Source: Haliotis rufescens
Taxonomy: Eukaryota
Reading direction: 5' to 3'
Assembly (NCBI RefSeq): GCF_023055435.1
Contig: NW_025964360.1
Coordinates: 496,001 to 560,000, forward strand
Length of the DNA: 64,000 nt
The notes below the pieces were generated by a model. The model worked only from the letters and a program-made list of their open reading frames with translations. It had not been told where the DNA came from and did no database searches. Shown here piece by piece: positions 4,391-61,879 of the stretch; positions within the stretch are counted from its first letter, which is position 1, and the number at the start of each line of letters is the position of its first letter. The translations under genes were made by a program, and so were the position numbers.

Positions 4391-4434
4391 TAAACTAATT
4401 ATAGCGGTCCAATCATGAGTGGGTGATGGTGCTG

Positions 4435-7697: not shown

Positions 7698-7699
7698 AT

Positions 7700-7731
<32 letters not shown>

Positions 7732-18300: not shown

Positions 18301-18668
18301 CCTACTCCACTACACGCCACCTACTCCACTACACGCCACCTACTCCACTACCTACCATCTACTCCACTACCCGCCACCTACACTACTACCCGCCACCTAC
18401 TCCACTACCCACATCCTACTCCACTGCCCACATCCTACTCCACTACCCGCCATCTACTCCACTACCCGCCACCTACTTCACTACACGCCACCTACTCCAC
18501 TACCTACCATCTATTCCACTACCCGCCACCTACACTACTACCCGCCACCTACTCCACTACCCACATCCTACTCCACTACCCACATCCTACTCCACTACCC
18601 ACATCCTACTCCACTACCCACAGCCTACTCCACTACGCGCCACCTACTCCACTACGCGCCACCTACTA
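15358..18668. repeat. 3.3-kb 19-bp minisatellite (ctactccactacccgccgc and variants), extremely C-rich on the plus strand
   Basis: Unit length 19; variants drift along the array (ccgtcgcc-type, then ccgccacc-type). Confidence 0.95.
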
Positions 18669-18903
18669 AGGTGGGGTGTAGGTGCCATAATATGAAGCCG
18701 TTTACAGTGCAGTTTCATTATGAAATCATAAAGAATAATCTGCAACCAGAATGACCACCTGTTCCACTAAAGTGAGTCTCTTTCTTACGATCAGATTAGT
18801 ACGGTAATATATTTCTGGGTCCAATAGTTACAAAATAGCTACTGCGGGGATTCCGGGTCCTTGTCCCCCTCACTTATCGTAAGAGTCGTTTTAAATGGGG
18901 ATA

Positions 18904-27027: not shown

Positions 27028-27313
27028 NNNNNNNNNNNNNNNNNNNNNNNNNNNNNNNNNNNNNNNNNNNNNNNNNNNNNNNNNNNNNNNNNNNNNNNNN
27101 NNNNNNNNNNNNNNNNNNNNNNNNNNNNNNNNNNNNNNNNNNNNNNNNNNNNNNNNNNNNNNNNNNNNNNNNNNNNNNNNNNNNNNNNNNNNNNNNNNNN
27201 NNNNNNNNNNNNNNNNNNNNNNNNNNNNNNNNNNNNNNNNNNNNNNNNNNNNNNNNNNNNNNNNNNNNNNNNNNNNNNNNNNNNNNNNNNNNNNNNNNNN
27301 NNNNNNNNNNNNN
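27028..27313. other. Assembly gap (N run)
   Basis: Direct inspection. Confidence 1.
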
Positions 27314-29249: not shown

Positions 29250-29547
29250 CTTGGAGAACGGCTTCCAACATTAAGCTGATACGCAGTGCTATAACCGACT
29301 AAACAGCTCAAAGACTAGTTCAACAGCACTCACTTATTCACTCAAAACATACACTTGTTGACGTTAAATTAAAGTTCGCATGAAAGAGACCCTGCTGTTT
29401 GATAAGACCTCAGTTATCTTATCTCTTCCGAAATAACGTTAACATAACACTTCAATGGCGTATGTGGTGTTTACTCATTGAGGTGGGAATAATGCATCTG
29501 GTGCCGACAAACAGGATCTATTGTGTTGTTTACATTCTTCTAGACGG

Positions 29548-29627
29548 TATAAATATGACTTGATAGATGCCTTTCATACTACATTCAAACTCCTATTCAA
29601 CTAAACACGTCACAAGACAAGGTAAGT
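29548..29627 (+). promoter_or_regulatory. TATA box (29548-29555), Inr-like TCATACT, non-coding exon 1 and donor (AAG|GTAAGT at 29622) of HExxH gene copy 1
   Basis: The same block is conserved upstream of copies 2 and 4. The matching acceptor tttttatttacAG (30704-30705) lies 4 nt before the ATG. Confidence 0.75.
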
Positions 29628-29968
29628 TGTGACAATTATCCACTCCAGTGGCTGTTTATTTAGATGGTTTGAATCGCAGATTAGCCTCGATAATGTTTTT
29701 GGGTTGTCAGCACCATAAACGAGCTCCTGGGTTTCACAAGTAGGACATAAATCTGAAATTCTGTTCAAAGCACGTTAAACCAAACTCACTCACTCACTCA
29801 CTCACTCACTCACTCACTCACTCACTCACTCTATTGCGTTGAGATCATATTCAAGTATATATTTCATTTCTCGCCATTTCTAATGCGACTTTTAATGTAC
29901 AACATTGTTTTGCTTTGCGGTATTCACGTTCGTTTTTTAACCATAGTAAAGACCTTGACATAGAACTG

Positions 29969-30143
29969 GAGTGAGTGAGTGAATATGGTTTTACGAAGCC
30001 ATGAGGAATATTCCAGCAATATCACGGGGGGGGGGGGGGACACAAGAAATGGGCTTCATACATTGTACCAATGTGCAAATTCGAACCCGTGCCTTCAGCG
30101 TGACGTTCTAACGCTTTAACCACCAGGCTACCCGACTGCCCCT
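29969..30143 (-). mobile_element. SINE family B in the intron of copy 1 (shared with copy 2 at about 38695-38865)
   Basis: Homology and identical flanks. Confidence 0.8.
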
Positions 30144-30240
30144 GATAGAACGGCAAACCTCTTGAATATTTGCATCCAATATCTACATTCTTTACATGAC
30201 TTCTACACCTTCAATTGTATATCACGGTTATACCAGTGTC

Positions 30241-30648
30241 AGGGGGCACGGGTGGCCCAGTCATCTAAGGCTTCACTGTGCAGAGTTGCGTCCCTTGGGC
30301 ACGCCAGAAACCTATGATTGTGGGTTCGAATCCCGGTTCGCCCCGATTATGTTTCTAGGTTTCTAGTGAGTGAGTGAGTGAGTTGGGTTTAACTCCGCTT
30401 TTAACAGTATTCCAGTTATATCACGGCGCGTCAGCTTAATGTGGGAGGAAAGCCCGAAGTGATGCAGGTCTCAGACGTATACCACTTCGGTGAAACCCAC
30501 GAGCACGGGTATGGTGCTGACAAACCTAGAAACATAATTGGGGCAAACCGGGATTCGAAACCACAATCATAGGTTTCTGGCGTGCCCAAGGGACGCAACT
30601 CTGCATAGCGAATCGCGGCGCCTTAGATGACTGGGCCACCCTTGCCCC
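30241..30648. mobile_element. SINE family D (tRNA-like head, V-domain-like body): partial plus-strand copy (30241-30363) abutting a full minus-strand copy (30365-30648)
   Basis: Inverted arms of about 120 bp; homology to 35402-35678, 39548-39818, 47910-48190 and 50555-50820. Confidence 0.8.
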
Positions 30649-30709
30649 CTTCCTATGAAGCTAAATTGGTATAAAATAACTGAACGTTTGCCTTTTTATT
30701 TACAGAAGC

Positions 30710-32950
30710 ATGACCCTGCTGCCCCTGATGTACCTCTCAATGATGCTCACGACCTGTTGCTTCACACAGAACACTGTCAAGCAGATAAAGGAAAACATGA
30801 AATCCTATGCCAAGGGCTATGTTATCCAATACTATGCGCCTTATGTTAACACACAACCTGATGAGCATAAAATGAAGCTCTTGAAACACCTAGAGGACAA
30901 CCTGCTACTAATTACCAGTACGGAGGACAAGGAGATCGATGGGATGGACACACTGGTAAAGGGAAGAAGTAAAGTTTCCACAGACGTTGAAGATAATCTT
31001 GGTCCTAAAATCAGAAGTTTGTCTGCAAAGATTGACAGTAACGATGGCTTGCTTGTCTCCAATCCACAGAATTTGATGAGGGCAGTTTCCCGAGATGTAG
31101 AGGACAGTTTGGAACATAAGATCAGGAGTCTGTCCAATAAGGTTGACAGTAACGATGGCTTGCTTGTCTCCAATCCACAGAATTTGATGAGAGCAGTTTC
31201 CAGAGATGTAGAGAACAGTTTGGAACATAAGATCAGGAGTCTGTCCAATAAGGTTGACAGTAACGATGGCTTGCTTGTCTCCAATCCACAGAATTTGATG
31301 AGAGCAGTTTCCAGAGATGTAGAGAACAGTTTGGAACATAAGATCAGAAGCTTGTCTGCAAAGGTTGACAGTAACGATGGCTTGCTTGTCTCCAATCCAC
31401 AGAATTTGATGAGAGCAATTTCCCGAGATGTGGAGAACAGTCTGGAACATAAGATCAGGAGTCTGTCGAATAAGGTTGACAGTAACGATGGCTTGCTTGT
31501 CTCCAATCCACAGAATTTGATGAGAGCAGTTTCCAGAGATGTAGAGAACAGTTTGGAACATAAGATCAGAAGTTTGTCTGCAAAGGTTGACAGTAACGAT
31601 GGCTTGCTTGTCTCCAATCCACAGAATTTGATGAGAGCAGTTTCCCGAGATGTAGAGAACAGTTTGGAACATAAGATCAGAAGTTTGTCTGCAAAGGTTG
31701 ACAGTAACAATGGCTTGCTTGTCTCCAATCCACAGAATTTGATGAGGGCAGTTTCCAGAGATGTAGAGAACAGTCTCACAGACGTCATTGAAGCGATCAT
31801 CGATCAGCTACACAAAAATATGACTAGCGATGCCCAACTGTATAATGTTTTGAAAGAAGCATTGTTGTCATGGTTTCAATATCATGCTGAACACGATGAT
31901 ATGCAACTTCACAACCTTGACTTGGAGAATCTGATTAATTGGCTGACACTTGTGCACAACTCAAGGAGAAACGTCAGCAAAGAAGAGGAATCCTTTTACA
32001 CACACTGGAACACATCCCTGCCTATCTTGAGAGATACTTTGTCGTTCGCCGATACCGTCAAACCATTGTCAACATACGTATCCCTTTCTCTGATAGGCTT
32101 GACAGATAGCTTCATGAATCTCTACTGGCCTTTCCGTCGTGACATCAACCTAATGAACCAAAGATTAGCAGTCAAGGGTTTCAGGGGCACAGACGTGAGT
32201 GAAAATGATGCTAAGAAAGCGTTCTTTGACGAAATCAGAAAAATTCAGCCGATTCATCTCCCTGTGAAGAAAAATGAAATTGTACTCATCTTTGATGATG
32301 AGGACATAGCAGATTGGTTGAACGTCACAGGAGTTATGTCCCTTTCACCAGCCTACATGGCTTCTAAGAAACACATATTCACTGGGGAAGAGCAAAAGAA
32401 GATATCGACCACTGCACATGCCGCTCTCAGGATGATCAACAACACTCATCCTGAACTCTTTGACGCAATGACACAGATGATATCCTGCATTGCTTTCTAC
32501 AAACAAGAACACAAGGTTAACTTAGCTGGAGGAGTTCGCTCTGCCCTTGGTATGTTCTGGATGGACCCGAGTGTTGGGAGAGAATGGAGCGTTCCCTTCA
32601 TGGCGGAGCAAATAGTCCACGAGTACACCCACAACTCACTCAACTATGCAGAATTTGTCCATGGAACCTACAACGATAAATCGTCGTTGGGAAAGGCTGA
32701 GGTGAAATCGGCAATTCGTCTGGTTCCTCGACCCTACGACAAATCCCTGCATGCAGCTTACGTGTCAGCGGGACTTGTAACCTTTCATTCCAGGACTGGC
32801 TATCTGGAAAGAGCTGCACAGCTGCTGGAAACTCTTCCCCAAGCCGTGCGTGATCTGGCAACTGTGGAGGCAGAGAAGCATGTGTTGGATGGGTCCGGCA
32901 GGGCAATAGTCAAGTTCCTCACTGACTACATGTACCTCACAAGACTCTGA
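30710..32950 (+). CDS. Secreted repeat-containing protein with C-terminal alpha-KG-HExxH (peptide beta-hydroxylase-like) domain, copy 1 (746 aa, 7 x 37-aa repeats)
   Basis: Hydrophobic N-terminus MTLLPLMYLSMMLTTCCFT. Repeats at 30977-31777. GGVRSALGMFWMDP...AEQIVHEYTHNSL (HEYTH at 32618-32632)...SAIRLVPRPYDKSLHAAYV. Acceptor before the ATG; AATAAA at 32983. Confidence 0.85.
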   Translation: MTLLPLMYLSMMLTTCCFTQNTVKQIKENMKSYAKGYVIQYYAPYVNTQPDEHKMKLLKHLEDNLLLITSTEDKEIDGMDTLVKGRSKVSTDVEDNLGPKIRSLSAKIDSNDGLLVSNPQNLMRAVSRDVEDSLEHKIRSLSNKVDSNDGLLVSNPQNLMRAVSRDVENSLEHKIRSLSNKVDSNDGLLVSNPQNLMRAVSRDVENSLEHKIRSLSAKVDSNDGLLVSNPQNLMRAISRDVENSLEHKIRSLSNKVDSNDGLLVSNPQNLMRAVSRDVENSLEHKIRSLSAKVDSNDGLLVSNPQNLMRAVSRDVENSLEHKIRSLSAKVDSNNGLLVSNPQNLMRAVSRDVENSLTDVIEAIIDQLHKNMTSDAQLYNVLKEALLSWFQYHAEHDDMQLHNLDLENLINWLTLVHNSRRNVSKEEESFYTHWNTSLPILRDTLSFADTVKPLSTYVSLSLIGLTDSFMNLYWPFRRDINLMNQRLAVKGFRGTDVSENDAKKAFFDEIRKIQPIHLPVKKNEIVLIFDDEDIADWLNVTGVMSLSPAYMASKKHIFTGEEQKKISTTAHAALRMINNTHPELFDAMTQMISCIAFYKQEHKVNLAGGVRSALGMFWMDPSVGREWSVPFMAEQIVHEYTHNSLNYAEFVHGTYNDKSSLGKAEVKSAIRLVPRPYDKSLHAAYVSAGLVTFHSRTGYLERAAQLLETLPQAVRDLATVEAEKHVLDGSGRAIVKFLTDYMYLTRL
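30977..31777 (+). repeat. Coding 111-bp tandem repeat, 7 units (SRDVENSLEHKIRSLSNKVDSNDGLLVSNPQNLMRAV)
   Basis: Direct inspection of the ORF. Confidence 0.95.
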
Positions 32951-33494
32951 ATGTTCCATGCTGATTTTATATAAACTTTTTCAATAAACGGTTGCCAACT
33001 ATAATAGTTTTTACATTGATGTGCTTTTTGTGCAAGACAATTCAGATGTCAGAAGGTGTTCTCACATCCACACTGAACACGAACACGTTTTACTAAATGT
33101 CTGCTGTCCACTAGATATCTTGTCAATCGATGGTGCTGACTAAATGATACTTGAGTCAGTATATCATAGCTGTTCATTAATATCCCAGTCAATGGTACCC
33201 TAACTATTAAGCACTGGTCAGTGACATCACATTAACCCTCAAAAGTAATTAAATACCAACAGATTGGACAGTGGCATTTTTTCATCTTACAATTCAGATC
33301 CTCCAAGGGAAGAAAAGCTTCCTCAATTTTGAGCTGGTCAGTGGTTTCACCAGACCAACCAGGTCATGTGCACAGTGCACAATTTTAATGCACATGTCAA
33401 GAGAATCAATTGAGCACAGGTATCAGAAGCTATTAAGGATCAGAGTGAATAACACCACATCAAATCAGCCACCCTTGTCAGTTATGACCTTATG

Positions 33495-37953: not shown

Positions 37954-38035
37954 TATAAATATGACTTGTGATAGTTGTCTTTCATACCACACTCAAACTC
38001 CTATTCAGCTAAACACATCACAAGACAAGGTAAGT
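37954..38035 (+). promoter_or_regulatory. TATA box, non-coding exon 1 and donor (GTAAGT at 38030) of copy 2
   Basis: Homologous to 29548-29627; acceptor at 39873-39874. Confidence 0.75.
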
Positions 38036-39547
38036 TATGACAATTATCCGCTCCAGTGGCTATTTATTTAGATGTTTTGAATCGCAGATTAGCCCCGATA
38101 ATGTTTTTTTGGTTTGTCAGCACCATAAACGAGCTCCTGGGTTTCTCCAAAGTGATAATCGTCTTAAAGCAACGTTACTTCGGGATTTCCTCCCACATCA
38201 CACTGACATGCCTTCATATATCTGGAATACTGGTCAAAGCACGTTAAACAAAACTCACTCACTCACTCACTCACTCACGTATTGGTGTGATAGTCTACAG
38301 TTGGATCCTATGATAAAACTTATAATCGCGTTAGTCGTCACCTTCTTATTGTGCCGATGAGTGAGTGAGGGAGTATGGTTTGACGCGGCTTTTAGCAATA
38401 TTCCAGCAATATCACGGCGAGGGGACACCAGAAACGGGCTTCACACATTGTACCCGGTGTCATCGTAAACTACAGCGTGGATCGTTGATCATACTGGCAA
38501 CCATTCATTGACTGGCGCTAATTCAATTATATTCAGGCCCCCGGAATAATGCTAGAATATTGCTTTGAGATCATATTCAACTATATATTTCATTTCTCGC
38601 CATTTCTAATACTTCATTTAATTTGCAACCTTGTTTTACCATGCGGTATTCACGTTCGTTTTTTAACCATGGTGAAGACCTTGACATAGAACTGGAGTGA
38701 GTGAGTGAGTGAATATGGTTTAACGGCTCCGTGAGAAATATTCCAGCATAATCACGGCGGGGACACAAGAAATGGGCTTCATACATTGTACCAATGTGGA
38801 AATTGGAACCCGTGCCTTCGGCGTGACGTTCTAACGCTTTAACCCCTAGGCTACCCGACTACCCCTGATAGAACGGCAAACCTCTTGCATCCAATATCTA
38901 CACATATATTCTTTACATGACTTCTACACCTTCAATTGTATATCTCGGTTATAACAGTGTCAGTCGACCACTGTGATGTGAAGGCACACTCTTTAACCAT
39001 AAAGGATATCTGTAATCTGAGTATTAACATTTTTAAAACATTATTATTTCATAATCTCGATGATTATATGTGGGGGATAAAAGAAGGGGATAAGTGGGTA
39101 TTCTATTGATTGATTTTAAAATATATGTTGTGCCCATTCAAATTACAGAAGCTGGCATCTATCAAAATGTGGTTCCTGTGTATACCACATTTACATGCAC
39201 TTCAAAGATTAACACCAGTTAGACATGAGTTGCATGTGCAATTCCAAAATATGTGAATGAAGTTGATAAAATATATGATTGCAGTATGTAGAGAAGGATC
39301 TACTGCAACAATGCGGTAGTGTGACGCACCAAATAGACACATGATCGACCACCAATATGGGAATAAAAGGTTGAAAAAGTTATATTTCTTAAACCAATCG
39401 GTATATACATACATATTGTTAGTGGCTGTAGGTCTTGAGTTACTTCATTCTAAATCATTATTCGTATGGACCAACATTAACTACACTTATGGTTTAAATA
39501 TTCAGCGTCATGCTGCATATGTCAAAATGTGCTTCCCTCCTATGAAG

Positions 39548-39818
39548 TGAGTTCGGTTTAACTCGGCTTTTAACATTATTCCAGTTATATCACGGCGTGT
39601 CAGCTTAATGTGGGAGGAAAGCCCGAAGTGATGCAGGTCTCAGACGTTTACCGCTTCGGTGAAACCCACGAGCACGGGTATGGTGCTGACAAACCTGGAA
39701 ACATAATCGGGGCGAACCGGGATTCGAAACCACAATCATAGGTTTCTGGCGTGCCCAAGGGACGCAACTCTGCACAGCGAATCGCGGCGCCTTAGACGAC
39801 TGGGCCACCCTTGCCCCC
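39548..39818 (-). mobile_element. SINE family D in the intron of copy 2, TSD tcctatgaag
   Basis: Direct repeat on both sides; the empty site tctcctatgaagcc is present in copy 4 (about 59232-59243). Confidence 0.9.
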
Positions 39819-39878
39819 TTCCTATGAAGCTTAATTGGTATAAAATAACTGAACGTTTGACTTTTTATTTACAGAAAC

Positions 39879-42230
39879 ATGACCCTGCTGACCCTGATTT
39901 ACCTCTCAATGATGCTCACGACCTGTTGCTTCACACAGAGCACTGTCAAGCAGATAAAGGAAAACATGAAATCCTATGCCAAGGGCTATGTTATCCAATA
40001 CTATGTGCCTTATGTTAACACACAACCTGATGAGCATAAAATGAAGCTCTTGAAACACCTAGAGGACAACCTGCTACTAATTACCAGTACGGAGGACAAG
40101 GAGATCGATGGGATGGACACACTGGTAAAGGGAAGAAGTAAAGTTTCCACAGACGTTGAAGATAATCTTGGTCCTAAAATCAGAAGTTTGTCTGCAAAGG
40201 TTGACAGTAACGATGGCTTGCTTGTCTCCAATCCACAGAATTTGATGAGGGCAGTTTCCCGAGATGTAGAGGACAGTTTGGAACATAAGATCAGGAGTCT
40301 GTCCAATAAGGTTGACAGTAACGATGGCTTGCTTGTCTCCAATCCACAGAATTTGATGAGGGCAGTTTCCCGAGATGTAGAGGACAGTTTGGAACATAAG
40401 ATCAGGAGTCTATCCAATAAGGTTGACAGTAACGATGGCTTGCTTGTCTCCAATCCACAGAATTTGATGAGAGCAGTTTCCAGAGATGTAGAGAACAGTT
40501 TGGAACACAAGATCAGGAGTCTGTCCAATAAGGTTGACAGTAACGATGGCTTGCTTGTCTCCAATCCACAGAATTTGATGAGAGCAGTTTCCCGAGATGT
40601 AGAGAACAGTTTGGAACATAAGATCAGGAGTTTGTCTGCAAAGGTTGACAGTAACGATGGCTTGCTTGTCTCCAATCCACAGAATTTGATGAGAGCAGTT
40701 TCCGGAGATGTAGAGGACAGTTTGGAACATAAGATCAGGAGGCTGTCCAATAAGGTTGACAGTAACGATGGCTTGCTTGTCTCCAATCCACAGAATTTGA
40801 TGAGAGCAGTTTCCCGAGATGTAGAGAACAGTTTGGAACATAAGATCAGGAGTTTGTCCAATAAGGTTGACAGTAACGATGGCTTGCTTGTCTCCAATCC
40901 ACAGAATTTGATGAGGGCAGTTTCCCGAGATGTAGAGGACAGTTTGGAACATAAGATCAGAAGTTTGTCTGCAAAGGTTGACAGTAACAATGGCTTGCTT
41001 GTCTCCAATCCACAGAATTTGATGAGGGCAGTTTCCCGAGATGTAGAGAACAGTCTCACAGACGTCATTGAAGCGATCATCGATCAGCTACACAAAAATA
41101 TGACTGGCGATGCCCAACTGTATAATGTTTTGAAAGAAGCATTGTTATCATGGTTTCAATACCATGCTGAACACGATAATATGCAACTTCACAACCTTGA
41201 CTTGGAGAATCTGATTAATTGGCTGACACTTGTGCACAACTCACGGAGAAACGTCAGCAAAGAAGAGGAATCCTTTTACACACACTGGAACACATCCCTG
41301 CCTATCTTGAGAGATACTTTGTTGTTCGCCGATACCGTCAAACCATTGTCAACATACGTATCCCTTTCTCTGATGGGCTTGACAGATAGCTTCATGAATC
41401 TTTACTGGCCTTTCCGTCGTGACATCAACCTAATGAACCAAAGATTAGCAGTCAAGGGTTTCAAGGGCACAGACGTGAGTGAAAGTGATGCTAAGAAAGC
41501 GTTCTTTGGCGAAATCAGAAAAATTCAGCCGATTCATCTCCCTGTGAAGAAAAATGAAATTGTACTCATCTTTGATGATGAGGACATAGCAGATTGGTTG
41601 AACGTCACAGGAGTTATGTCCCTTTCACCAGCCTACATGGCTTCTAAGAAACACATATTCACTGGGGAAGAGCAAAGGAGGATATCGACCACTGCACATG
41701 TCGCTCTCAGGATGATCAACAACACTCATCCTGAACTCTTTGACGCAATGACACAGATGATATCCTGCATTGCTTTCTACAAACAAGAACACAAGGTTAA
41801 CTTAGCTGGAGGAGTTCGCTCTGCCCTTGGTTTGTTCTGGATGGACCCGAGTGTTGGGAGAGAATGGAGCGTTCCCTTCATGGCGGAGCAAATAGTCCAC
41901 GAGTACACCCACAACGCACTCAACTATGCAGAATTTGTCCATGGAACCTACAACGATAAATCCACGTTGGGAAAGGCTGAGGTGAAATCGGCCATTCGTC
42001 TGGTTCCTCGTCCCTACGACAAATCCCTGCATGCAGCTTACGTGTCAGCGGGACTTGTAACCTTTCATTCCAGGACTGGCTATCTGGAAAGAGCTGCACA
42101 GCTGGTGGAAACTCTTCCCCAAGCCGTGCGTGATCTGGCAACTGTGGAGGCAGAGAAGCTTGTGCTGGATGGGTCCGGCAGGGCAATAGTCAAGTTCCTC
42201 ACTGACTACATGTACCTCACAAGACTCTGA
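39879..42230 (+). CDS. Secreted repeat-containing alpha-KG-HExxH-like protein, copy 2 (783 aa, 8 x 37-aa repeats)
   Basis: Near-identical to copy 1; repeats at 40146-41057; HEYTH...RLVPRPYDKSLH intact; AATAAA at 42263. Confidence 0.85.
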   Translation: MTLLTLIYLSMMLTTCCFTQSTVKQIKENMKSYAKGYVIQYYVPYVNTQPDEHKMKLLKHLEDNLLLITSTEDKEIDGMDTLVKGRSKVSTDVEDNLGPKIRSLSAKVDSNDGLLVSNPQNLMRAVSRDVEDSLEHKIRSLSNKVDSNDGLLVSNPQNLMRAVSRDVEDSLEHKIRSLSNKVDSNDGLLVSNPQNLMRAVSRDVENSLEHKIRSLSNKVDSNDGLLVSNPQNLMRAVSRDVENSLEHKIRSLSAKVDSNDGLLVSNPQNLMRAVSGDVEDSLEHKIRRLSNKVDSNDGLLVSNPQNLMRAVSRDVENSLEHKIRSLSNKVDSNDGLLVSNPQNLMRAVSRDVEDSLEHKIRSLSAKVDSNNGLLVSNPQNLMRAVSRDVENSLTDVIEAIIDQLHKNMTGDAQLYNVLKEALLSWFQYHAEHDNMQLHNLDLENLINWLTLVHNSRRNVSKEEESFYTHWNTSLPILRDTLLFADTVKPLSTYVSLSLMGLTDSFMNLYWPFRRDINLMNQRLAVKGFKGTDVSESDAKKAFFGEIRKIQPIHLPVKKNEIVLIFDDEDIADWLNVTGVMSLSPAYMASKKHIFTGEEQRRISTTAHVALRMINNTHPELFDAMTQMISCIAFYKQEHKVNLAGGVRSALGLFWMDPSVGREWSVPFMAEQIVHEYTHNALNYAEFVHGTYNDKSTLGKAEVKSAIRLVPRPYDKSLHAAYVSAGLVTFHSRTGYLERAAQLVETLPQAVRDLATVEAEKLVLDGSGRAIVKFLTDYMYLTRL

Positions 42231-42431
42231 ATGTTCCATGCTGATTTTATATAAACTTTTTCAATAAACGGTTGCCAACTATAACAGTTTTTACATTGAT
42301 GTGCTTTTTGTGCAAGACAATTCAGATGTCAGAAGGTGTTCTCACATCCACACTGAACACGAACACGTTTTACTAAATGTCTGCTGTCCACTAGATATCT
42401 TGTCAATCGATGGCGCTGACTAGATGATACT

Positions 42432-46660: not shown

Positions 46661-47909
46661 CCTATGTTGAACATCTAATATACTGGTAATGTGAAACCTG
46701 ATATATACCTTGTGATGTTGAACATCTAATATACTGGGTAATGTGAAACCCGATTCATGCCTTATGATGTTGACCATCTTATATGCTGGGTAATGTGAAA
46801 CCTGATTTATACCTTATGATGTTGAACATCCAGTATACTGGGTAATGTGAAACCTGATTAATACCTTATGATGTTGAACATCTAAAATACTGGGTAATGT
46901 GAAACCTGATTTATACCTTGTGATGTTGAACATCCAGTATACTGGGTAATGTGGAACCTGATTAATACCTTGTGATGTTGAACATCTAATATACTGGGTA
47001 ATGTGAAACCTGATTTATACCTTGTGATGTTGAACATCTAATATCCTGGGTAATGTGAAATCTCAGTCATACCTTGTGATGTTGAATATCTAATATCCTG
47101 GGTAATGTGAAATCTGATTGATACCTTGTGATGTTGAACATCTAATATACTGGGTAATGTGAAACCTGATTTATACCTTGTGATGTTGAACATCTAACAT
47201 ACTGGGTAATGTGAAACCTGATTCATACCTTGTGATGTTGAGGATCTAATATACTGGGTAATGTGAAACCTGATTCATACCTTGTGATGTTGAACATCTA
47301 ATAATCAGGATAATGTGAAACCTGATTTATACCTTGTTATGTTGAACATCTAATATACTGGGTAATGTGAAACCTGATTTATACCTTGTGATGTTGAATA
47401 TCTAATATCCTGGGTAATGTGAAATCTCATTCATACCTTGTGATGTTGAACATCTAATATACTGGGTAATGTGAAACCTGATTTATACCTTGTGATGTTG
47501 AACATCTAATATACTGGGTGATGTGAAATCTGATTTATACCTTGTGATGTTGAACATCTAATATACTGGGTAATGTGAAATCTGATTGATACCTTGTGAT
47601 GTTGAACATCTAACATACTGGGTAATGTGAAACCTGATTTATACCTTGTGATGTTGAGGATCTAATATACTGGGTAATGTGAAACCTGATTCATACCTTG
47701 TGATGTTGAACATCTAATAATCAGGATAATGTGAAACCTGATTTATACCTTGTGATGTTGAGGATCTAATATACTGGGTAATGTGAAACCTTATTTATAC
47801 CTTGTGACGTTGAACAACTTATATACTGGACAATGTGAAACCTGATTTATACCTTATGATGTTGAACACCTGATATACTGGGAAATGTGAAACGTCATTT
47901 ATACCTTGT
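46661..47909. repeat. 52-bp satellite type II (taccttgtgatgttgaacatctaatatactgggtaatgtgaaacctgattta), about 24 units
   Basis: Only a few units exist at the equivalent position after copy 1 (35245-35780). Confidence 0.92.
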
Positions 47910-48190
47910 GAGTGAGTGAGTGAGTTGGGTTTAACTCCGCTTTTAACAGTATTCCAGGTATATCACGGCGTGTCAGCTTAATGTGGGAGGAAAGCCCGAA
48001 GTGATGCAGGTCTCAGACGTTTACCACTTCGGTGAAACCCACGAGCACGGGTATGGTGCTGACAAACCTGGAAACATAATCGGGGCGAACCGGGATTCGA
48101 AACCACAGTCATAGGTTTCTGGCGTGCCCAGGGACGCAACTCTGCACAGCGAATCGCGGCGCCTTAGACGACTGGGCCACCCTTGCCCCC
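47910..48190 (-). mobile_element. Chimeric SINE family D (recombination junction)
   Basis: The left flank ttataccttgt is the TSD of the downstream-type insertion; the right flank tcctatgaag is the TSD of the intronic insertion. Confidence 0.85.
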
Positions 48191-48250
48191 TTCCTATGAA
48201 GCTTAATTGGTATAAAATAACTGAACGTTTGACTTTTTATTTACAGAAAC

Positions 48251-49936
48251 ATGACCCTGCTGACCCTGATGTACCTTTCAAAGATGCTCACGACCTGTTG
48301 CTTCACACAGAGCACTGTCAAGCAGATAAAGGAAAACATGAAATCCTATGCCAAGGGCTATGTTATCCAATACTATGTGCCTTATGTTAACACACAACCT
48401 GATGAGCATAAAATGAAGCTCTTGAAACACCTAGAGGACAACCTGCTACTAATTACCAGTACGGAGGACAAGGAGATCGATGGGATGGACACACTGGTAA
48501 AGAGAAGAAGTAAAGTTTCCACAGACGTTGAAGATAATCTTGGTCCTAAAATCAGAAGTTTGTCTGCAAAGGTTGACAGTAACGATGGCTTGCTTGTCTC
48601 CAATCCACAGAATTTGATGAGGGCAGTTTCCCGAGATGTAGAGGACAGTCTGGAACATAAGATCAGAAGTTTGTCTGCAAAGGTTGACAGTAACGATGGC
48701 TTGCTTGTCTCCAATCCTCAGAATTTGATGAAGGCAGTTTCAAGAGATGTAGAGAACAGTCTCATAGACGTCATTGAAGCGATCATCGATCAGCTACACA
48801 AAAATATGACTGGCGATGCCCAACTGTATAATGTTTTGAAAGAAGCATTGTTATCATGGTTTCAATACCATGCTGAACACGATAATATGCAACTTCACAA
48901 CCTTGACTTGGAGAATCTGATTAATTGGCTGACACTTGTGCACAACTCACGGAGAAACGTCAGCAAAGAAGAGGAATCCTTTTACACACACTGGAACACA
49001 TCCCTGCCTATCTTGAGAGATACTTTGTTGTTCGCCGATACCGTCAAACCATTGTCAACATACGTATCCCTTTCTCTGATGGGCTTGACAGATAGCTTCA
49101 TGAATCTTTACTGGCCTTTCCGTCGTGACATCAACCTAATGAACCAAAGATTAGCAGTCAAGGGTTTCAAGGGCACAGACGTGAGTGAAAGTGATGCTAA
49201 GAAAGCGTTCTTTGGCGAAATCAGAAAAATTCAGCCGATTCATCTCCCTGTGAAGAAAAATGAAATTGTACTCATCTTTGATGATGAGGACATAGCAGAT
49301 TGGTTGAACGTCACAGGAGTTATGTCCCTTTCACCAGCCTACATGGCTTCTAAGAAACACATATTCACTGGGGAAGAGCAAAAGAGGATATCGACCACTG
49401 CACATGCCGCTCTCAGGATGATCAACAACACTCATCCTGAACTCTTTGACGCAATGACACAGATGATATCCTGCATTGCTTTCTACAAACAAGAACACAA
49501 GGTTAACTTAGCTGGAGGAGTTCGCTCTGCCCTTGGTTTGTTCTGGATGGACCCGAGTGTTGGGAGAGAATGGAGCGTTCCCTTCATGGCGGAGCAAATA
49601 GTCCACGAGTACACCCACAACTCACTCAACTATGCAGAATTTGTCCATGGAACCTACAACGATAAATCCACTTTGGGAAAGGCTGAGGTGAAATCGGCCA
49701 TTCGTCTGGTTCCTCGTCCCTACGACAAATCCCTGCATGCAGCTTACGTGTCGGCGGGACTTGTAACCTTTCATTCCAGGACTGGCTATCTGGAAAGAGC
49801 TGCACAGCTGGTGGAAACTCTTCCCCAAGCCGTGCGTGATCTGGCAACTGTGGAGGCAGAGAAGCATGTGCTGGATGGGTCGGGCAGGGCAATAGTCAAG
49901 TTCCTCACTGACTACATGTACCTCACAAGACTCTGA
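48251..49936 (+). CDS. alpha-KG-HExxH-like protein, copy 3 (561 aa, 2 repeats); ORF intact but without its own promoter and exon 1
   Basis: Repeats at 48518-48763; catalytic motifs intact; M11K in the signal peptide; acceptor at 48245-48246 kept; AATAAA at 49969. Confidence 0.75.
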   Translation: MTLLTLMYLSKMLTTCCFTQSTVKQIKENMKSYAKGYVIQYYVPYVNTQPDEHKMKLLKHLEDNLLLITSTEDKEIDGMDTLVKRRSKVSTDVEDNLGPKIRSLSAKVDSNDGLLVSNPQNLMRAVSRDVEDSLEHKIRSLSAKVDSNDGLLVSNPQNLMKAVSRDVENSLIDVIEAIIDQLHKNMTGDAQLYNVLKEALLSWFQYHAEHDNMQLHNLDLENLINWLTLVHNSRRNVSKEEESFYTHWNTSLPILRDTLLFADTVKPLSTYVSLSLMGLTDSFMNLYWPFRRDINLMNQRLAVKGFKGTDVSESDAKKAFFGEIRKIQPIHLPVKKNEIVLIFDDEDIADWLNVTGVMSLSPAYMASKKHIFTGEEQKRISTTAHAALRMINNTHPELFDAMTQMISCIAFYKQEHKVNLAGGVRSALGLFWMDPSVGREWSVPFMAEQIVHEYTHNSLNYAEFVHGTYNDKSTLGKAEVKSAIRLVPRPYDKSLHAAYVSAGLVTFHSRTGYLERAAQLVETLPQAVRDLATVEAEKHVLDGSGRAIVKFLTDYMYLTRL

Positions 49937-50554
49937 ATGTTCCATGCTGATTTTATATAAACTTTTTCAATAAACGGTTGCCAACTATAACAGTTTTTAC
50001 ATTGATGTGCTTTTTGTGCAAGACAATTCAGATGTCAGAAGGTGTTCTCACATCCACACTGAACACGAACACGTTTTACTAAATGTCTGCTGTCCACTAG
50101 ATATCTTGTCAATCGATGGCGATTAGATGATACTTGATTGAGTATATCATATCTGTTCATTAATATCCCAGTCAATGGTACCCTAACTATTAAGCACTGG
50201 TCAGTGACATCACATTAACCCTCAAAAGTAATTACATACCGACAGATGGGACAGGGGAATTATTTCATCTTACAATTCAGATCCTTCAAGGGAAGAAAAG
50301 CCAGCCAGGTGGCTTCTTCCTCAATTTTGAGCTGGTCAGTGGTTTCACCAGGCCAACCAGGTAATGTGCACAGTGCACAATGCACATGTTAAGAGAATCA
50401 GTTGAGCACCGGTATCAGAAGCTATTAAGGATCAGAGTGAATAACACCACATCAAATAAGCCACCCTTGTCAGTTATTACCTTATATATAACTTGTGTCA
50501 CCTCCAATATACCCTGTGATGTTACACCTCTCCTACACTGTGTAACCTGACGCC

Positions 50555-54915: not shown

Positions 54916-54997
54916 TATAAATATGACTTGTGATAGGTGTCCTTCATACTACACTCAAACTCCTATTCAACTACACACGTCACCAGACCAGGTAAGT
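54916..54997 (+). promoter_or_regulatory. TATA box, non-coding exon 1 and donor (CAG|GTAAGT at 54992) of copy 4
   Basis: Homologous to 29548-29627; acceptor at 59284-59285, giving a 4.3-kb intron. Confidence 0.75.
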
Positions 54998-55329
54998 TGT
55001 GACCATTTTCTACTCCAGTGGCTATGCATCCAGAACATGTGATCGCTGGTTACAATTTCAGATTTTCAGATGTGTTTTGGTTTGGCAGCACCATAAACAA
55101 GCTCCTGATTTCACCAAAGTGGTAATGGTGTAAAACCTACATGTATTACTTCTGGATTTCCTTCAACATGAAACTAACACCCGTGATATATTTGAAATAT
55201 TGTTCAAAGCACGTTAAACCAAACCCACCTACTTACTCACTCACTTAATCACTGGGTACAGCTTGATCATGAGATGAAAAACTTGTGGATTCGAGGGGTA
55301 TGGGGCTGATCTCCCTCTCTTAATGCATC

Positions 55330-55496
55330 CGGGCGGTCGGGTAGCCTAGTGGTTAAAGCGTTCGCTCGTCACGCCGAAGACCCGGGTTCGATTCCCGACA
55401 TGGGTACAATGTGTGAAGCCCATTTCTGGTGACCCCCGCCGTGATATTGCTGGAATATTGCTAAAAGCGGCGTAAAACCAAACTCACTCACTCACT
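55330..55496 (+). mobile_element. SINE family B, TSD ctcttaatgcatcc
   Basis: Flanking direct repeat; A and B boxes. Confidence 0.9.
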
Positions 55497-55694
55497 CTTA
55501 ATGCATCCATCGTATTAGGATAGAAATTGTGGTGTGAGTCGAAATCCTAGGACCGGGAAGTTGTGATGACTGAGCTAGCAGACGGTGTCATCGTAAACCA
55601 CAGTGTGGATTGTTGTTCATGCGTTCAAACACTCACTGAGTTGGGCTAATTCAATTATTTGGAGGCCGCCGGGGTATTGCTTTGAAGTAATATA

Positions 55695-56674
55695 CACTCA
55701 CGCCCAAAAGAAATTTTACCAGAGTTTAAAATCATTCTTGCTCCAAAACAACAAAACATACATGCATGAAGTAAAGTGTATTGAGACCATCAATCTATCA
55801 ACATAATCAACACTGAAAATGACAATCATACCGCCACCGAGAATGACGTAAGAGCCCCCCACAGTTGGGTGTGGTGCAAGACTCGAGCTTTCAGAATCAT
55901 GGACAATAGGCAGAGTACATTGTTGTCTTCCATCAGCCCTAAACATACAGAATCGACTTTCGTCAGTGAAGACAACCCTCTGCCAGTCATGTCGTTGCCA
56001 ACGTCGTACAGTCCGGGCCCATCTCAATCGCAGACGACGATGTTGCGCTGTCAATAGCTGTCCTCTATGTGGTCTAAAAGCCCTGATTCCATGAGCCCTG
56101 AGTCTCCTGGCCACTGTCTGTCGACTAACCCTGTGACCTAAGGCATTTGTCGCCGATGACGTCACTGTCAGGAAGCGATTTCGGAGGTGCAAGGTACGCA
56201 AGAACCGGTCATCATGGGGCGTGGTCACCCTGGGTCTGCCTGTCCTTGGCCTGTCAGCTGTCCGCCCTGTCTGTCTGTAACGTTGCATCAAGTTGGTAAC
56301 GGCAACACGGGAGCAACCGAAGGTTCGTGCAATATGGGCGTGGGTTGCTCCCATCTGTACCATACCCAAGGCTCATTCACGTTGTTCGACTGTGAGTCGT
56401 GGCATTTCTTTTGTGTTTTTCATCACTGTGGATGTCTGACTTGCCGTTGCAATCGTTTTATACCCTTACCCGCACGTACATTTGCAGTTGTCCGTGGTGC
56501 ACGTGTTTTTCACATTTTCGCGTGTTATCTCGCAAACAGGTAACAGACGATTAACATTTTCTGCATACATTATTGTTTTATTTAGGTACTTTAGATAGAC
56601 TTCATCGAAAAAAAATGTATACTTTGTCTGAAATTTATATTTTCAGTTGGTAAAGTTCCTTTTGGACGTCAGTT
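55695..56674 (-). mobile_element. Internally deleted Tc1-like transposon in the intron of copy 4
   Basis: 26-bp imperfect TIRs (CACTCACGCCCAAAAGAAATTTTACC / GGTAAAGTTCCTTTTGGACGTCAGTT) flanked by TA. Transposase starts MPRLTVEQRE* at 56405, with paired-like HTH, GRPRVTT and VVFTDESRF, then is truncated. Confidence 0.88.
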
Positions 56675-58074
56675 TATTTCTTCTCTTCATTTCCAATACT
56701 GGACTGTGCATCTAATTTACAACCGTGGTTTCAGCGATCCAATTATATAATTTTCACCGCTATGTTGCCTTTTACCCCCAATGGAATCTGTTCCGTCGAG
56801 ACTTGAGACTGGTTTTTCGCTAACGTTGACGTTTTATATGTGTTTGCTATTTGGCATTCACGTTCGTATTAACCAAGGTGAAGACCTTGATATAGAACAT
56901 GAAACCTATTGAACATTGGTGTCAAATGCTAGTATCCACACATATTATCTCCACATGGTCTCCACACCTTCAATTGAATATCATGGTTATAACAGTATCT
57001 GTCGTCCGCCCTGATGTGAAGACATGGCGTTAAACTGTGTAAGGATGGGATTTTGATTTCTCGATGATTTTATCTTACTTCAAAATAGGAAAAGGAGGGG
57101 ACATATGTATATATTGTTCTTTTCGCACTCATTGACAAACGTGCAAAACTACTCTTTACTATACAGGATCATCACTCACGTATCGAACAGTTTGGATAAA
57201 AGTATTATTAGCTCTAGCATTTTACCTTTTTATTTATTTGACCATCAACCACACTTCATCTGGACAAAGTCATCATTATTTCCAATGTTTGAGCAAATGC
57301 ATCAAAACGTATTTCCCGAACGTCTTTCATGTGAAATATTACACAGCGTTTTCGCGTTTGATTTTACTCCTTCGTCTATGATTTATGTGCCTATTTAAAA
57401 TATAGACATTGTCATCTATAAAATTTGGTTCTTGTGTGTACCAAATCTAAATGCACATCAAAGGTAAACATGAAAGAGGTGGATATGCCATTCTAAAATA
57501 TGTAAATTAAGTGATTGCTGCATATGTACCAAAAAATACCTGTATTGTTTCATAGGCATTTCTTTAAAGTTGACGGATGACAAAGTAGACACAGTTTATG
57601 GATAACAACTTCTTTATTTTACTGTAATAACGACGTTTTAGTATAGATCTTTATACCGTTGTTATAACATAACATATATGACCAATGATATATTTGGGAT
57701 AACATTTTCTGAGTAAAGTACCTCGGTTGCTGAGTGGGTAGATCGCAGACTTTGTGTGCTGGCGAGTAGTACGTAGGTGTCTTACTCTGGCAGTGTGGGT
57801 TCGAATCCCCCCAAAAGTACGATACGAGAATCTGTACTTTACTCAGAAAGTGTTTTCCCAAATATAACATTCGTTATATTTGACCACTTTCTAAATGACA
57901 TTGTGTGTTTATGGTACAGAATATATATGGTTAGTGGAGGAGTAAGAGTAACAACAATTGCATTAATGAGAGAGATTAACATGAGTAGGTAAAATAATAA
58001 CAGCAGAAGCATAATACTGTAACAACAAGAGGGACAGAAAAAACACATGATGAGGTAGCCAATAAGACAGGAAG

Positions 58075-58940
58075 TCAATAAAACAGGATTAAGCATACAT
58101 AGGTAGGGTGATTATTGCTTAATGAGTTCATAGAAGGCGGATGAAATGGCCTTGATCTCTGTTGATTGATGATTTTGTGGCGGCGAATGTGGACTGTTAG
58201 TTTAGTTCTTTCAGTGAAGTCACGGAGCAGGGGAGAGAGGATTTTTATGTTTTGCCAGTTCATGTTGTGATAAAAGCAGTTGCTGATATGGTTGGAGATG
58301 GCTGATTTACTGCCTGATTTGATGATTGAAGTTTTGTGCTCTTTGAATCTGGTGTTGACGAGGCGGGATGTCCCACCTCCATAGGATTTTCCACAGTTAT
58401 AGTCAATTTTATAAATTACACCTGTAGGTTTTTGTAGTTTGTTGTGTTTCTGCCTTTGGCAGTAGGGTATTGGGGGAGGTGGATCCGGTGAAGAAGGTGT
58501 CAATATTGGCTTGGGGTTTGATGACATGGCTTTTCCTATGAATGGAAAGGCGATGTGGAAGGGCGCTGATTCAGGTTTGGAGGTGGTAGATCTGGGTGTG
58601 GGACGATGTACAGAGATAATGACTTTGTCGATGAGTTTAGAGTGGATAAGTGTTGACGTGTGTGAAGTCTTGACGGAGATGTTTGATCTCAGGTTTGGTG
58701 TTAGCAGGGGAAAGGTTGATGGGTCGTTTGTTGAGAACAGAGATGGTGCCAATCTAGTCTTAAGGGGATTTTGAGGTTGAAGTGGATGTACTGATCAGAT
58801 TGGGAAGGCTTTCGGTAGACACTGGTTTGGATTCTGGAGACAAGGAAGGGTTGTTGGTTATTCCTTTCTGTTTCCGTGGTGAACTGTACTCAAGGGGGTT
58901 GTTGTTTTAGATGTTGTATTAGTAGGTTTTGGTCTTGGTC
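58075..58940 (-). mobile_element. Penelope-like element remnant (GIY-YIG endonuclease) in the intron of copy 4
   Basis: GVIYKIDYNCGKSYGGGTSRLVNTRFKEHK...SAISNH is a decayed PLE GIY-YIG motif. Confidence 0.7.
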
Positions 58941-59289
58941 TTGTTGTAGTATGACAAAAGTGTCGTCGACCTTTCTGTACCAGCAAATGGGATCATTAAT
59001 AAACAGTGTGACATATAAGAAAGGCACGTGATCGACTACCAAGATTGGAATAAAAGGTTAATCAGTTTTATCTAATTAATCCAACAATATCTTTAATCAA
59101 ATCGTTTTGCTTATTTTTAAGATAATTTAATCATAATTCATATATGATAACAAATACTCCTTCCATTGTTTACATTTTCTTGTGTTCATGCAGGATGTGT
59201 GAAAATGTGAAAGAGCAGTTTGCAATAAATCTCCTATGAAGCCACAATGATCTAAAAAACTGAACTATGGACTTTTTATTTACAGAAAC

Positions 59290-61284: not shown

Positions 61285-61879
61285 ATGTTTCATCCTGGTT
61301 TCAGAGTCACTTATTCAATAAACGGTTGGAAACTGTAATTTTACATTTTTGTGATTTGTATGCAAGACCATTTCAGACGTCTGATGGTGTTTTGTTCTCA
61401 CATCCACACTGTAACCAGGAAATGAAACTTTTCACTAGATATCTTGTTCCCTATATGCTGTCCGTTTACTAGATGATACTTGATTCGGTATATCATAGCT
61501 GTTCATTATTATGCCAGCCAATGGTAGCTTTTTCTACTTTTTCTACTTATTATGTTCTGGTCAGTGCAATCATATTTACGATATTTATGCTTATTAAATG
61601 CCAACAGATGGCAATTCCGTCTTGATATTCAGTTCCTCCAAGGCAAGTATAACCAGGTAGCGACTCTCTTAATTATGAACTGACCGGTGGTTTTACAGTA
61701 TCTCAACACAAAGACCAATAAAATTAAACCTTCAATATACTGAATAACGATAAGCCTCCAATACTCTAGGTAACCCTAAATACAGCAGGTAATGTTACAT
61801 CTAGAATACATAGGAGCATGTTACTCACCATTATATTACATCACGATTACATTACGTCACCCTATATGCATAATTGAAA

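Follow-up and report, generated by a model that had tools for sequence, protein, structure and literature searches.

How did a gene family whose enzyme domain resembles those of bacterial peptide-modification clusters come to occupy an abalone chromosome, and what was transferred? To address this, we analyzed a 64,000-nucleotide stretch of the Haliotis rufescens genome (the window), which carries four intact tandem copies of the gene. An initial annotation made from the sequence alone had described an intronless bacterial-type coding sequence under an animal promoter with a single 5'-UTR intron, and proposed a bacterial origin by horizontal transfer (or retroposition) followed by gain of a signal peptide and repeats. 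We first asked whether this anatomy is present. TATAAATA, a roughly 45-nt non-coding exon and a GTAAGT donor occur in 3 of 4 intact copies, while an acceptor 4 nt before the ATG, one uninterrupted coding exon and AATAAA 33 nt after the stop occur in 4 of 4. The observation was confirmed. The 5' module (TATA plus donor) is found at 29539, 37945 and 54907. Copy 3 lacks this module, and its homology to copies 1 and 2 starts only about 345 nt before its ATG, next to a satellite array. The five N-glycosylation sequons that had been listed for copy 1 (NMT, NVS, NTS, NVT and NNT) are also present in its translation. Coordinates of all features are collected below.

Features of the four gene copies within the window (position 1 is the first letter of the window)
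Position	Strand	Feature	Basis
29548..29555	+	TATA box of copy 1, TATAAATA	Read directly; the 22-nt module around it is found 3 times in the window, where shuffles expect 0.01
29576..29621	+	Putative non-coding exon 1 of copy 1	Start inferred from the TATA spacing, end from the donor AAG/GTAAGT, which is conserved in copies 1, 2 and 4; no RNA evidence obtained
29622..30705	+	5'-UTR intron of copy 1 (1,084 nt), with host short interspersed repeats and an (ACTC)n run	Acceptor TTTACAG/AAGC; the repeat at 30366-30650 has thousands of copies in the genome
30706..32998	+	Exon 2 of copy 1: 4 nt of UTR, CDS at 30710-32950 (746 aa), 3' UTR	Single ORF; contigs of 4 of 4 runs cover about 30764-32998, with zero depth beyond about 32998
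30710..30769	+	Signal-peptide-like hydrophobic N-terminus (aa 1-20)	Read from the translation; no signal-peptide predictor was applied
30794..30823	+	Leader-like motif N-M-K-S-Y-A-K-G-Y-V (aa 29-38) in a confidently modelled helix	pLDDT 86-94 in the copy 3 model
31006..31774	+	6.9 tandem units of 111 nt (37 aa), candidate core peptides	Each unit holds L-M-R-A-V-S-R-D; pLDDT below 50 in the copy 3 model
32417..32911	+	Match to TIGR04267, the aKG-HExxH domain (aa 570-734); the conserved enzyme region starts earlier, near aa 455	E 1.2e-17, 64.5 bits, cut-off 40; fold match to 8s5f
32618..32632	+	H-E-Y-T-H, the HExxH metal motif	Read directly
32983..32988	+	AATAAA poly(A) signal of copy 1	Conserved in 4 of 4 copies; a 977-nt contig ends at 32998, followed by adapter letters
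37954..42268	+	Copy 2: TATA at 37954, donor after 38029, intron 38030-39874, CDS 39879-42230 (783 aa, 7.7 repeats), AATAAA at 42263-42268	ORF, repeat, module and signal searches
47905..49974	+	Copy 3: only the last ~345 nt of the intron, the acceptor and the CDS at 48251-49936 (561 aa, 1.9 repeats); no 5' module	ORF, repeat and module searches; comparison with copies 1 and 2
54916..61322	+	Copy 4: TATA at 54916, donor after 54991, 4.3-kb intron, CDS 59290-61284 (664 aa, 4.4 units of 105 nt)	ORF, repeat, module and signal searches

To determine whether the genes are expressed and spliced, we aligned contigs from four sequencing runs to the copy 1 region. In 4 of 4 runs the transcriptome-like contigs cover the coding exon and not the flanks, although the RNA nature of these runs is a guess. 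The spliced junction 29621^30706, which the initial annotation had proposed to look for, was not seen, and no contig aligned to 29400-29647 in 4 of 4 runs. This absence is uninformative, since the contigs that did align carry letters of the copy 2/3 type and exon 1 of copy 1 matches copy 2 at only 42 of 46 bases, below the 95% likeness used. Additionally, dN/dS is 0.30–0.52, indicating constraint.

We next examined the identity of the C-terminal domain. Copies 1 and 4 score 64.5 bits against TIGR04267, above the curated NCBIfam cut-off of 40, and the bivalve and rotifer proteins score 56 and 57.1, respectively. A profile search also hit ChlH (PDB 8s5f) with E 2.2e-5. The AF2 model has pLDDT 94.6, and its top 5 Foldseek hits are all aKG-HExxH structures at probability 1.00: 8s5f chains at E 1.3e-7 with TM 0.42–0.50, and 22ob at E 2.4e-5, with the next hit at E 0.16. 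H282, E283, H286 and R319 are invariant in 78 of 78 aligned sequences and H326 is nearly invariant, while the roles of R319 and H326 were not shown. The nearest Atlas clusters are 97–100% bacterial. Thus, the domain is a bacterial-type aKG-HExxH peptide oxygenase by score, motif and fold, whereas peptide oxidation dependent on Fe(II) and 2-oxoglutarate was not assayed.

A phylogeny with bacterial and eukaryotic homologues had been named beforehand as a way to test a bacterial origin. An exhaustive HMMER search gave 712 hits, in which a strong top group was followed by ~280-aa bacterial proteins. In our careful tree of 81 rows, the animal sequences form one clade (100/100) placed within bacterial diversity, a group containing Massilia, Pseudoduganella, Azospirillum and Phenylobacterium is supported at 100/97, and the union of the two is supported at 90/71. 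The root was not inferred and the donor lineage is not resolved, as the AU test does not reject animals plus the Bacillus-type group (p 0.275). The named animal holders are only molluscs (four Haliotis species and four bivalve genera) and one bdelloid rotifer, Adineta. Because only 30 of the 150 listed hits were looked up by name, fourteen or more animal-clade proteins come from assemblies without a species name, and other animal genomes were not searched directly, this distribution does not settle whether presence among animals is truly patchy. Nevertheless, the clade indicates that the event is old and shared with bivalves, rather than specific to abalone.

Integration into the host genome is supported by several observations. 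The genes lie in a 2.0-Mb contig, and the repeat in the copy 1 intron is a host element: a genome search gave 7,859 first-look candidates, of which the 40 scored were 96–97% identical on many contigs. GC content is 41–49% in the CDS and 38–46% in the flanks. All Haliotis copies have an uninterrupted coding exon, and of the 10 genome matches, each intact domain lies in one frame. The acceptor lies 2–4 nt before the ATG in the window copies and in 2 of 2 distant paralogues inspected, and the 5'-UTR intron is shared by paralogues that are about 50% identical.

One result is new here and concerns the region in front of the enzyme. The N-terminal helix carries the leader motif (N-I-x-x-Y/F) of small precursor genes that lie next to the bacterial enzymes. 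A small upstream ORF with the leader motif plus a core was found in 4 of 4 Firmicutes loci and multi-core precursors lie upstream in 4 of 4 proteobacterial loci, while a ninth locus (L015) showed none, for a total of 8 of 9 bacterial loci inspected. The leader pattern hits 18 of 22 animal N-termini, 7 of 10 sister-group enzymes and 4 of 4 Firmicutes precursor ORFs, but is found 0 times in 13,374 later residues, and it is found in 8 of 4,400 shuffles. Hhalign pairs the motif regions with P 6.4e-4, although its probability is only 28%, and both the leader and core patterns were written after the sequences had been seen. Many of the tandem repeats carry a core-like motif (M-K/R/Q-hydrophobic-x-D/E), but the window-type repeat has two extra residues between Met and Asp, and 11 of 34 animal-clade proteins with an N-terminal region have no tandem repeats. 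The repeats are modelled with low pLDDT between a confident N-terminal helix and the domain, which may only reflect a shallow alignment. Bacterial relatives have no signal-like N-terminus, whereas all 22 animal N-termini examined begin with a hydrophobic stretch. Literature searches found nothing in print.

Comparison with the closest systems places these proteins as follows. The ChlBH enzyme, whose HExxH domain is PDB 8s5f (family TIGR04267 / IPR026337), beta-hydroxylates Asp and His in a RiPP (ribosomally made, post-translationally modified peptide) precursor (PMC12636437). The abalone protein shares its family score, motif, invariant Arg and fold, but is animal-encoded, has a signal-peptide-like N-terminus, has no radical-SAM partner domain, carries leader-like and core-like sequences fused in front, and is only 16–18% identical to 8s5f. 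PflC/PosC of Pseudomonas belong to the same enzyme family, act on a leader-bearing precursor, hydroxylate side chains and can cut the backbone oxidatively to leave a C-terminal amide (PMC12636437). Their precursor is a separate nitrile-hydratase-like leader peptide with a Gln run and an A-R-M-D tail, and no evidence here shows that the abalone enzyme cuts the backbone. Uncharacterised Firmicutes clusters, in Bacillus phage SPbetaL1 (OQ921341.1) and on plasmids of Staphylococcus aureus (pPH1-1), S. warneri and Cytobacillus, encode an enzyme of the same subfamily, and their small upstream gene carries the same leader motif (N-I-x-x-Y/F-x-x-x-H/Y) and a Met-x-Leu/Ile-His-Asp-Glu-type core. There, precursor and enzyme are separate genes with one core per precursor and no secretion signal of the animal kind. 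In contrast, two bacterial proteins, the metagenome protein P0031 from the proteobacterial sister group and P0181 (Bacillus thuringiensis, partial), have tandem core-like units fused N-terminally to the enzyme. In P0031 the order is leader motif, five units, enzyme, exactly as in the animal proteins, while both lack the signal peptide, have shorter units and lie in a prokaryotic gene context. Borosins such as OphMA are self-modifying precursor-enzyme fusions with substrate and enzyme on one chain, and fungal dikaritins and animal neuropeptide precursors contain many cores released at K-R sites, but the enzyme folds, chemistry and organisms are unrelated and the resemblance is functional only.

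Our preferred reading, to which we assign a probability of roughly 0.8, is that these are real, transcribed abalone genes that descend from a bacterial RiPP module taken up by an ancestor of molluscs. Our analysis shows that the C-terminal ~290 residues are an aKG-HExxH non-haem-iron peptide oxygenase, that the gene sits among host repeats with one coding exon and an acceptor just before the ATG, and that it has been duplicated in tandem at the DNA level. What we infer, by comparison, is that a fusion of precursor and enzyme was transferred rather than a bare enzyme, with the N-terminal helix corresponding to the leader and the tandem repeats to multiplied core peptides, and that the animal lineage added a signal peptide, a promoter with a 5'-UTR intron, and a poly(A) signal. 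The interpretation in the initial annotation is thus partly supported: the bacterial type of the domain, the placement of the animal clade, the uninterrupted coding exon, the gain of a signal-like N-terminus and the exclusion of contamination by host repeats all held, whereas the repeats were probably inherited rather than gained after the transfer, since bacterial relatives (P0031 and P0181) already carry N-terminal tandem cores fused to the enzyme and the abalone N-terminus carries the leader motif of bacterial precursor genes, retroposition has no support, with no intron-bearing parent among the 10 genome matches, and the 5' exon and its junction still lack RNA evidence. In the mechanism we propose, which is untested, the protein would enter the ER, the leader-like helix would dock on the enzyme domain, and the flexible repeat tract would be presented to the Fe(II)/2-oxoglutarate site and oxidised, most likely by beta-hydroxylation of the Asp that follows the Met-basic-hydrophobic motif; neither modification nor release of the core was measured. 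In paralogues with K-R at each unit boundary, the units would then be released by proprotein convertases. Counts of [KR]R are 22 and 7 (G-K-R) in two paralogues (C401 and C79, respectively) but 0, 1, 1 and 4 in window copies 1, 2, 3 and 4, a mixed outcome that neither establishes nor excludes a multi-copy propeptide and leaves peptide release unclear for copies 1–3.

Of the alternatives, the one that survives best, although we consider it unlikely, is that the enzyme is of bacterial origin but the repeats are not its substrate. In this view the repeats would be a flexible spacer or binding tract and the secreted oxygenase would act in trans on other proteins such as matrix, mucus or shell proteins. 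The animal-clade proteins without repeats, the great differences in repeat sequence between paralogues, the near absence of dibasic sites in copies 1–3, and repeat-driven Pfam noise suggesting amphipathic helices are consistent with this. However, the leader motif is shared with bacterial precursor genes, a Met-basic-hydrophobic-x-Asp motif recurs in the repeats of unrelated lineages, bacterial fusions have the same order of parts, and the sister enzymes have multi-core precursors next door.

Vertical inheritance of an old animal (or eukaryotic) gene lost in most lineages is very unlikely. The family is present in two spiralian phyla and an unrooted tree cannot exclude a root on the animal stem. 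On the other hand, the named eukaryotic holders among the 30 proteins looked up are only molluscs and one bdelloid rotifer, the family is spread over many bacterial phyla, the domain has no coding introns in any Haliotis copy (ancient coding introns having been specified in advance as a sign of vertical descent), and the animal stem is long (1.1) and attaches next to one bacterial subgroup. Retroposition of an intron-bearing animal parent is less likely still: although the coding region is intronless, no intron-bearing parent is among the 10 genome matches, the copies retain a 5'-UTR intron also seen in distant paralogues, they arose by duplication of a unit that starts about 150 nt upstream of the TATA box, and no poly(A) tract follows the 3' end. 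Lastly, despite the bacterial type of the domain, contamination or an assembly artefact is all but excluded by the 2.0-Mb contig with host repeats inside the gene, orthologues in four Haliotis species, GC content similar to the flanks, and eukaryotic signals.

In its fullest form, which we consider about as likely as not, this reading implies that molluscs and at least one bdelloid rotifer would own a complete bacterial-type RiPP pathway packed into one secreted polypeptide, comprising signal peptide, leader, many core peptides and the oxygenase that modifies them. It would have been acquired as a ready-made fusion and have since diversified by changing core number and sequence, giving animals a way to produce libraries of hydroxylated (or oxidatively cut) peptides. 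In the literature read here, aKG-HExxH enzymes are described only from bacterial RiPP clusters (PMC12636437, PMC13060819). An animal version with its substrate built in would be a rare case of an animal inheriting a whole natural-product module rather than a single enzyme, and it makes directly testable whether animals make RiPP-like peptides of bacterial descent and how a transferred gene acquires a promoter, a UTR intron and a signal peptide. Additionally, the conserved leader and core motifs predict the substrate of an uncharacterised bacterial and phage subfamily.

We first examined the gene anatomy that the initial annotation had described for copy 1, and this observation held, as each of the elements listed (the TATA box, donor, acceptor, ATG, stop and AATAAA) is present where it had been placed. 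Four intact tandem genes lie within the window, and their coordinates are collected in the table together with those of the other features. The TATA-plus-donor module occurs three times in the window, where shuffles expect about 0.01, and it aligns between copies 1, 2 and 4. The acceptor and the poly(A) signal are conserved in 4 of 4 copies. In contrast, copy 3 lacks the module, and its similarity to copies 1 and 2 begins about 345 nt before its ATG, directly after a 52-nt satellite array. A fifth copy just beyond the window is broken into at least six short frames by stops and frameshifts and is a pseudogene.

Coordinates of the features. C582 is the contig that carries the window, at positions 496001-560000, C401 and C79 are two other contigs of the same 1.33-Gb genome, and L-numbers are extracted loci.
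Feature	Sequence	Coordinates	Strand
TATAAATA (TATA box), copy 1	window	29548	
Donor, copy 1	window	after 29621	
Acceptor, copy 1	window	before 30706	
ATG, copy 1	window	30710	
CDS, copy 1	window	30710-32950	
Stop, copy 1	window	32948-32950	
AATAAA, copy 1	window	32983	
CDS, copy 2	window	39879-42230	
CDS, copy 3	window	48251-49936	
CDS, copy 4	window	59290-61284	
Fifth copy, pseudogene	C582 (L019 2834-4437)	562834-564437	
Paralogue	L018 (C401)	3857-7765	
Paralogue	L016 (C79)	5420-7735	
Proteobacterial precursors	L011, L012, L013, L014	about 4400-4900 in each locus	
Precursor and HExxH genes, S. aureus plasmid pPH1-1	L021	1359-4715	
Precursor and HExxH pair, Bacillus phage SPbetaL1	L020	2295-3379	
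Two adjacent ORFs (253 and 485 aa)	window	42549-44772	+
Satellite arrays (51-52 nt)	window	33506-35020, 45672-47911, 50825-53459	
Proline-rich open frame (924 aa)	window	15895-18669	+
ORF (217 aa) in the intron of copy 4	window	55716-56369	-
Run of N (286 bases)	window	27028-27313	

The duplicated unit starts about 150 nt upstream of the TATA box, and conservation of the promoter module among the copies is therefore largely what duplication alone would give. Between copies 1 and 4, conservation of the 5' module is 80% over 29414-29737 and 42 of 46 in exon 1. With dS about 0.19 this is close to neutral expectation, and we do not count it as evidence of function. A better argument for the 5'-UTR intron comes from the two paralogues on contigs C79 and C401, which are about 53-56% identical in the domain and each have a polypyrimidine tract and CAG acceptor 2 nt before the ATG.

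The spaces between the gene copies are filled by large satellite arrays, one of which abuts the truncated 5' end of copy 3. The two adjacent ORFs between copies 2 and 3 look like a non-LTR retrotransposon reverse transcriptase, although they were not compared with any family library. The ORF inside the 4.3-kb intron of copy 4 is arginine-rich and transposase-like by eye only, and it was not tested. Additionally, the 924-aa open frame is made of a proline-rich ~16-aa tandem unit with a second overlapping frame also open, and may be a satellite rather than a gene.

To look for the spliced junction 29621^30706, which had been proposed at the outset as a test of the non-coding exon, we aligned four small contig sets from four studies to the locus. 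None of the 24 sequencing runs listed is on record as RNA. In 4 of 4 sets, contigs cover about 30764-32998, while bins 29400-29647 have depth 0 in all four runs and depth beyond 32996 is 0 to 4. A 977-nt contig ends at 32998, 10 nt after the AATAAA hexamer. These sets therefore behave like transcriptomes, and the 3' end fits the predicted poly(A) site. Exon 1 was not covered, and the 29621^30706 joint was not seen among the 15 of 65 joints inspected. However, exon 1 of copy 1 matches copy 2 at 42 of 46 bases, which is below the 95% likeness used, so this blank says nothing either way; no exon-joined model was built or searched, because exon 1 is non-coding. The contigs carry letters of the copy 2/3 type at many positions, and what is shown is expression of the family, not of copy 1 itself.

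In order to identify the protein, we compared it with family profiles. Pfam hits to WH_Rok, DUF5805, DUF1889, Ycf54 and others have no stretch that passes on its own and lie in the repeats, and were rejected as repeat noise. NCBIfam TIGR04267, the aKG-HExxH-type peptide beta-hydroxylase, matches aa 570-734 at 64.5 bits against a cut-off of 40, and a profile of the family finds ChlH, PDB 8s5f (E 2.2e-5). The AlphaFold model of the last 391 residues has mean pLDDT 94.6, and its top five Foldseek matches are 8s5f chains and 22ob, both HExxH oxygenases, while the next hit has E 0.16. H282, E283, H286 and R319 are invariant in 78 of 78 aligned sequences. This family is a zincin-like fold that uses Fe(II) and 2-oxoglutarate, and its members hydroxylate Asp, His or Gln in RiPP precursors and, in PflC/PosC, also cut the backbone oxidatively (PMC12636437). 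Pro hydroxylation has been added to these activities (PMC13060819).

To determine which organisms carry the domain, we performed an exhaustive HMMER search of 1.84 billion representatives, which gave 712 hits, with a strong top group followed by ~280-aa proteins. Organism names were looked up for 30 of the 150 hits listed. The best named protein matches are Haliotis rufescens loci. In the strong group the named organisms are Mercenaria, Mya, Mactra and Pinctada, the rotifer Adineta steineri, and Haliotis rufescens, H. rubra, H. cracherodii and H. asinina; the organism was not determined for at least fourteen members of this group. Of two profile searches of the named protein set, each limited to 8,000 candidates, one added only A. 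steineri, H. cracherodii and H. asinina, and the other added no new taxon. The second tier is bacterial or phage, comprising Bacillus phage SPbetaL1, Ectobacillus, Chthoniobacterales and Bacillus thuringiensis, and the nearest large Atlas clusters are 97-100% bacterial.

A phylogeny of the domain with bacterial homologues had also been named in advance as a test of bacterial origin. We built a quick tree of 104 rows, in which rows had to span the domain and 19 near-duplicates were dropped, and a careful tree of 81 rows, from which we had dropped 7 near-duplicate animal rows, 4 sister-group rows, 8 long-branch rows (one of these, P0109, is also one of the 4 sister-group rows) and 10 of 43 distant rows. 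Both trees place all animal rows in one clade (100/100, stem length 1.1) beside a group (100/97) that a search for related loci showed to be Massilia, Pseudoduganella, Azospirillum and Phenylobacterium. The union of the two has support of only 90/71, and the AU test does not reject animals plus the Bacillus-type group (p 0.275), so that the trees do not single out a donor; the root was not inferred. Inside the animal clade, Haliotis is monophyletic (100/97) and the deeper order is a polytomy. This fits one old acquisition with losses, but does not prove it.

Comparison with the bacterial loci yielded a new point concerning the N-terminal region. In 4 of 4 Firmicutes loci (phage SPbetaL1, and plasmids of S. 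aureus, S. warneri and Cytobacillus), a small gene lies just upstream of the enzyme gene and encodes N-I-x-x-Y/F-x-x-x-H/Y-hydrophobic, followed about 10-20 residues later by a core of the type hydrophobic-M-Q/K/I-L/I-H/K-D/E/T. The precursor and HExxH pair is carried by mobile elements, and the S. aureus plasmid pPH1-1 has two tandem HExxH genes and an MFS transporter; the function is uncharacterised. The same leader pattern lies right after the signal-like N-terminus in 18 of 22 animal proteins and at the N-terminus of 7 of 10 sister-group enzymes. As controls, it occurs in 0 of 115 other rows, 0 times in 13,374 later residues of the animal proteins, and in 8 of 4,400 shuffles. Because we wrote the pattern after seeing the sequences, these counts are descriptive. 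Additionally, hhalign pairs the two motif regions over 20 columns with P 6.4e-4 and probability 28%.

Two bacterial-type proteins carry tandem units fused to the enzyme. P0031, a member of the sister group, has the order leader motif, five tandem units ending F-V-M-A-L-H-Q-D, then enzyme, while the partial B. thuringiensis protein P0181 starts with repeated F-V-M-K-L-H-D-E units. The four proteobacterial loci instead have a separate upstream precursor with a conserved leader (…E-I-E-I-T…) and 1-3 Q-Y-V-W-G cores. In Pseudoduganella, a 550-aa gene follows the enzyme, and a Pfam scan of this gene found nothing.

Among animal-clade proteins with an N-terminal region, 23 of 34 have tandem repeats, although many of these are orthologues and so are not independent. 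In several lineages the unit carries the same short motif, as L-M-R-V-E-D, S-M-K-L-S-D, R-M-K-I-S-D or S-M-K-L-I-D, and in the window the unit carries L-M-R-A-V-S-R-D. The two other Haliotis paralogues, on C401 and C79, have the same layout but unrelated repeats. One is 1,302 aa with 38-aa units bounded by K-R and 22 [KR]R sites in its N-terminal region, and the other has 52-aa units containing G-K-R and 7 [KR]R sites; this looks like a multi-copy propeptide with an amidation-type site. In four further proteins, P0173 (A. steineri), P0180, P0019 and P0160, an AlkB-like 2OG-Fe(II) oxygenase domain (PF13532) is fused in front of the repeats and the HExxH domain, as found by a profile scan in P0173 and P0180 and read by eye in P0019 and P0160. 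This puts two different oxygenase domains on one chain, with up to about 40 repeat units. In the full-length model of copy 3, the N-terminal helices (aa 21-70) have pLDDT 86-94, the repeats have pLDDT below 50, and the domain is above 90.

The enzyme family and animal acquisition of bacterial genes are both known. Literature searches found no paper on animal members of this family or on the Firmicutes leader-core subfamily, although supplementary files, which could hold sequence-similarity networks that include eukaryotic members, were not covered. An animal, secreted, multi-core precursor-enzyme fusion is not known in what we could search.

The main alternative, which we consider possible but less likely, is that the repeats are a spacer and the enzyme acts in trans. 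In its favour are the 11 repeat-less members and the near absence of dibasic sites in copies 1-3. Vertical descent, retroposition and contamination are each unlikely.

The interpretation given in the initial annotation, that of a bacterial gene acquired by horizontal transfer or retroposition which then gained a signal peptide and repeats, was partly supported. While expression of the family is shown, as is constraint across the post-repeat region (dN/dS of 0.30-0.52), the idea that the repeats serve as a substrate in cis was examined here by comparison only. Oxidation of the Asp after the Met motif is our best guess, by analogy with known Asp hydroxylation in this family, and is not shown. 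The most economical reading is that a bacterial precursor-enzyme fusion was transferred, and that the animal lineage then added a signal peptide, a promoter with a UTR intron, and a poly(A) signal. On this reading, the repeats are tethered substrates.
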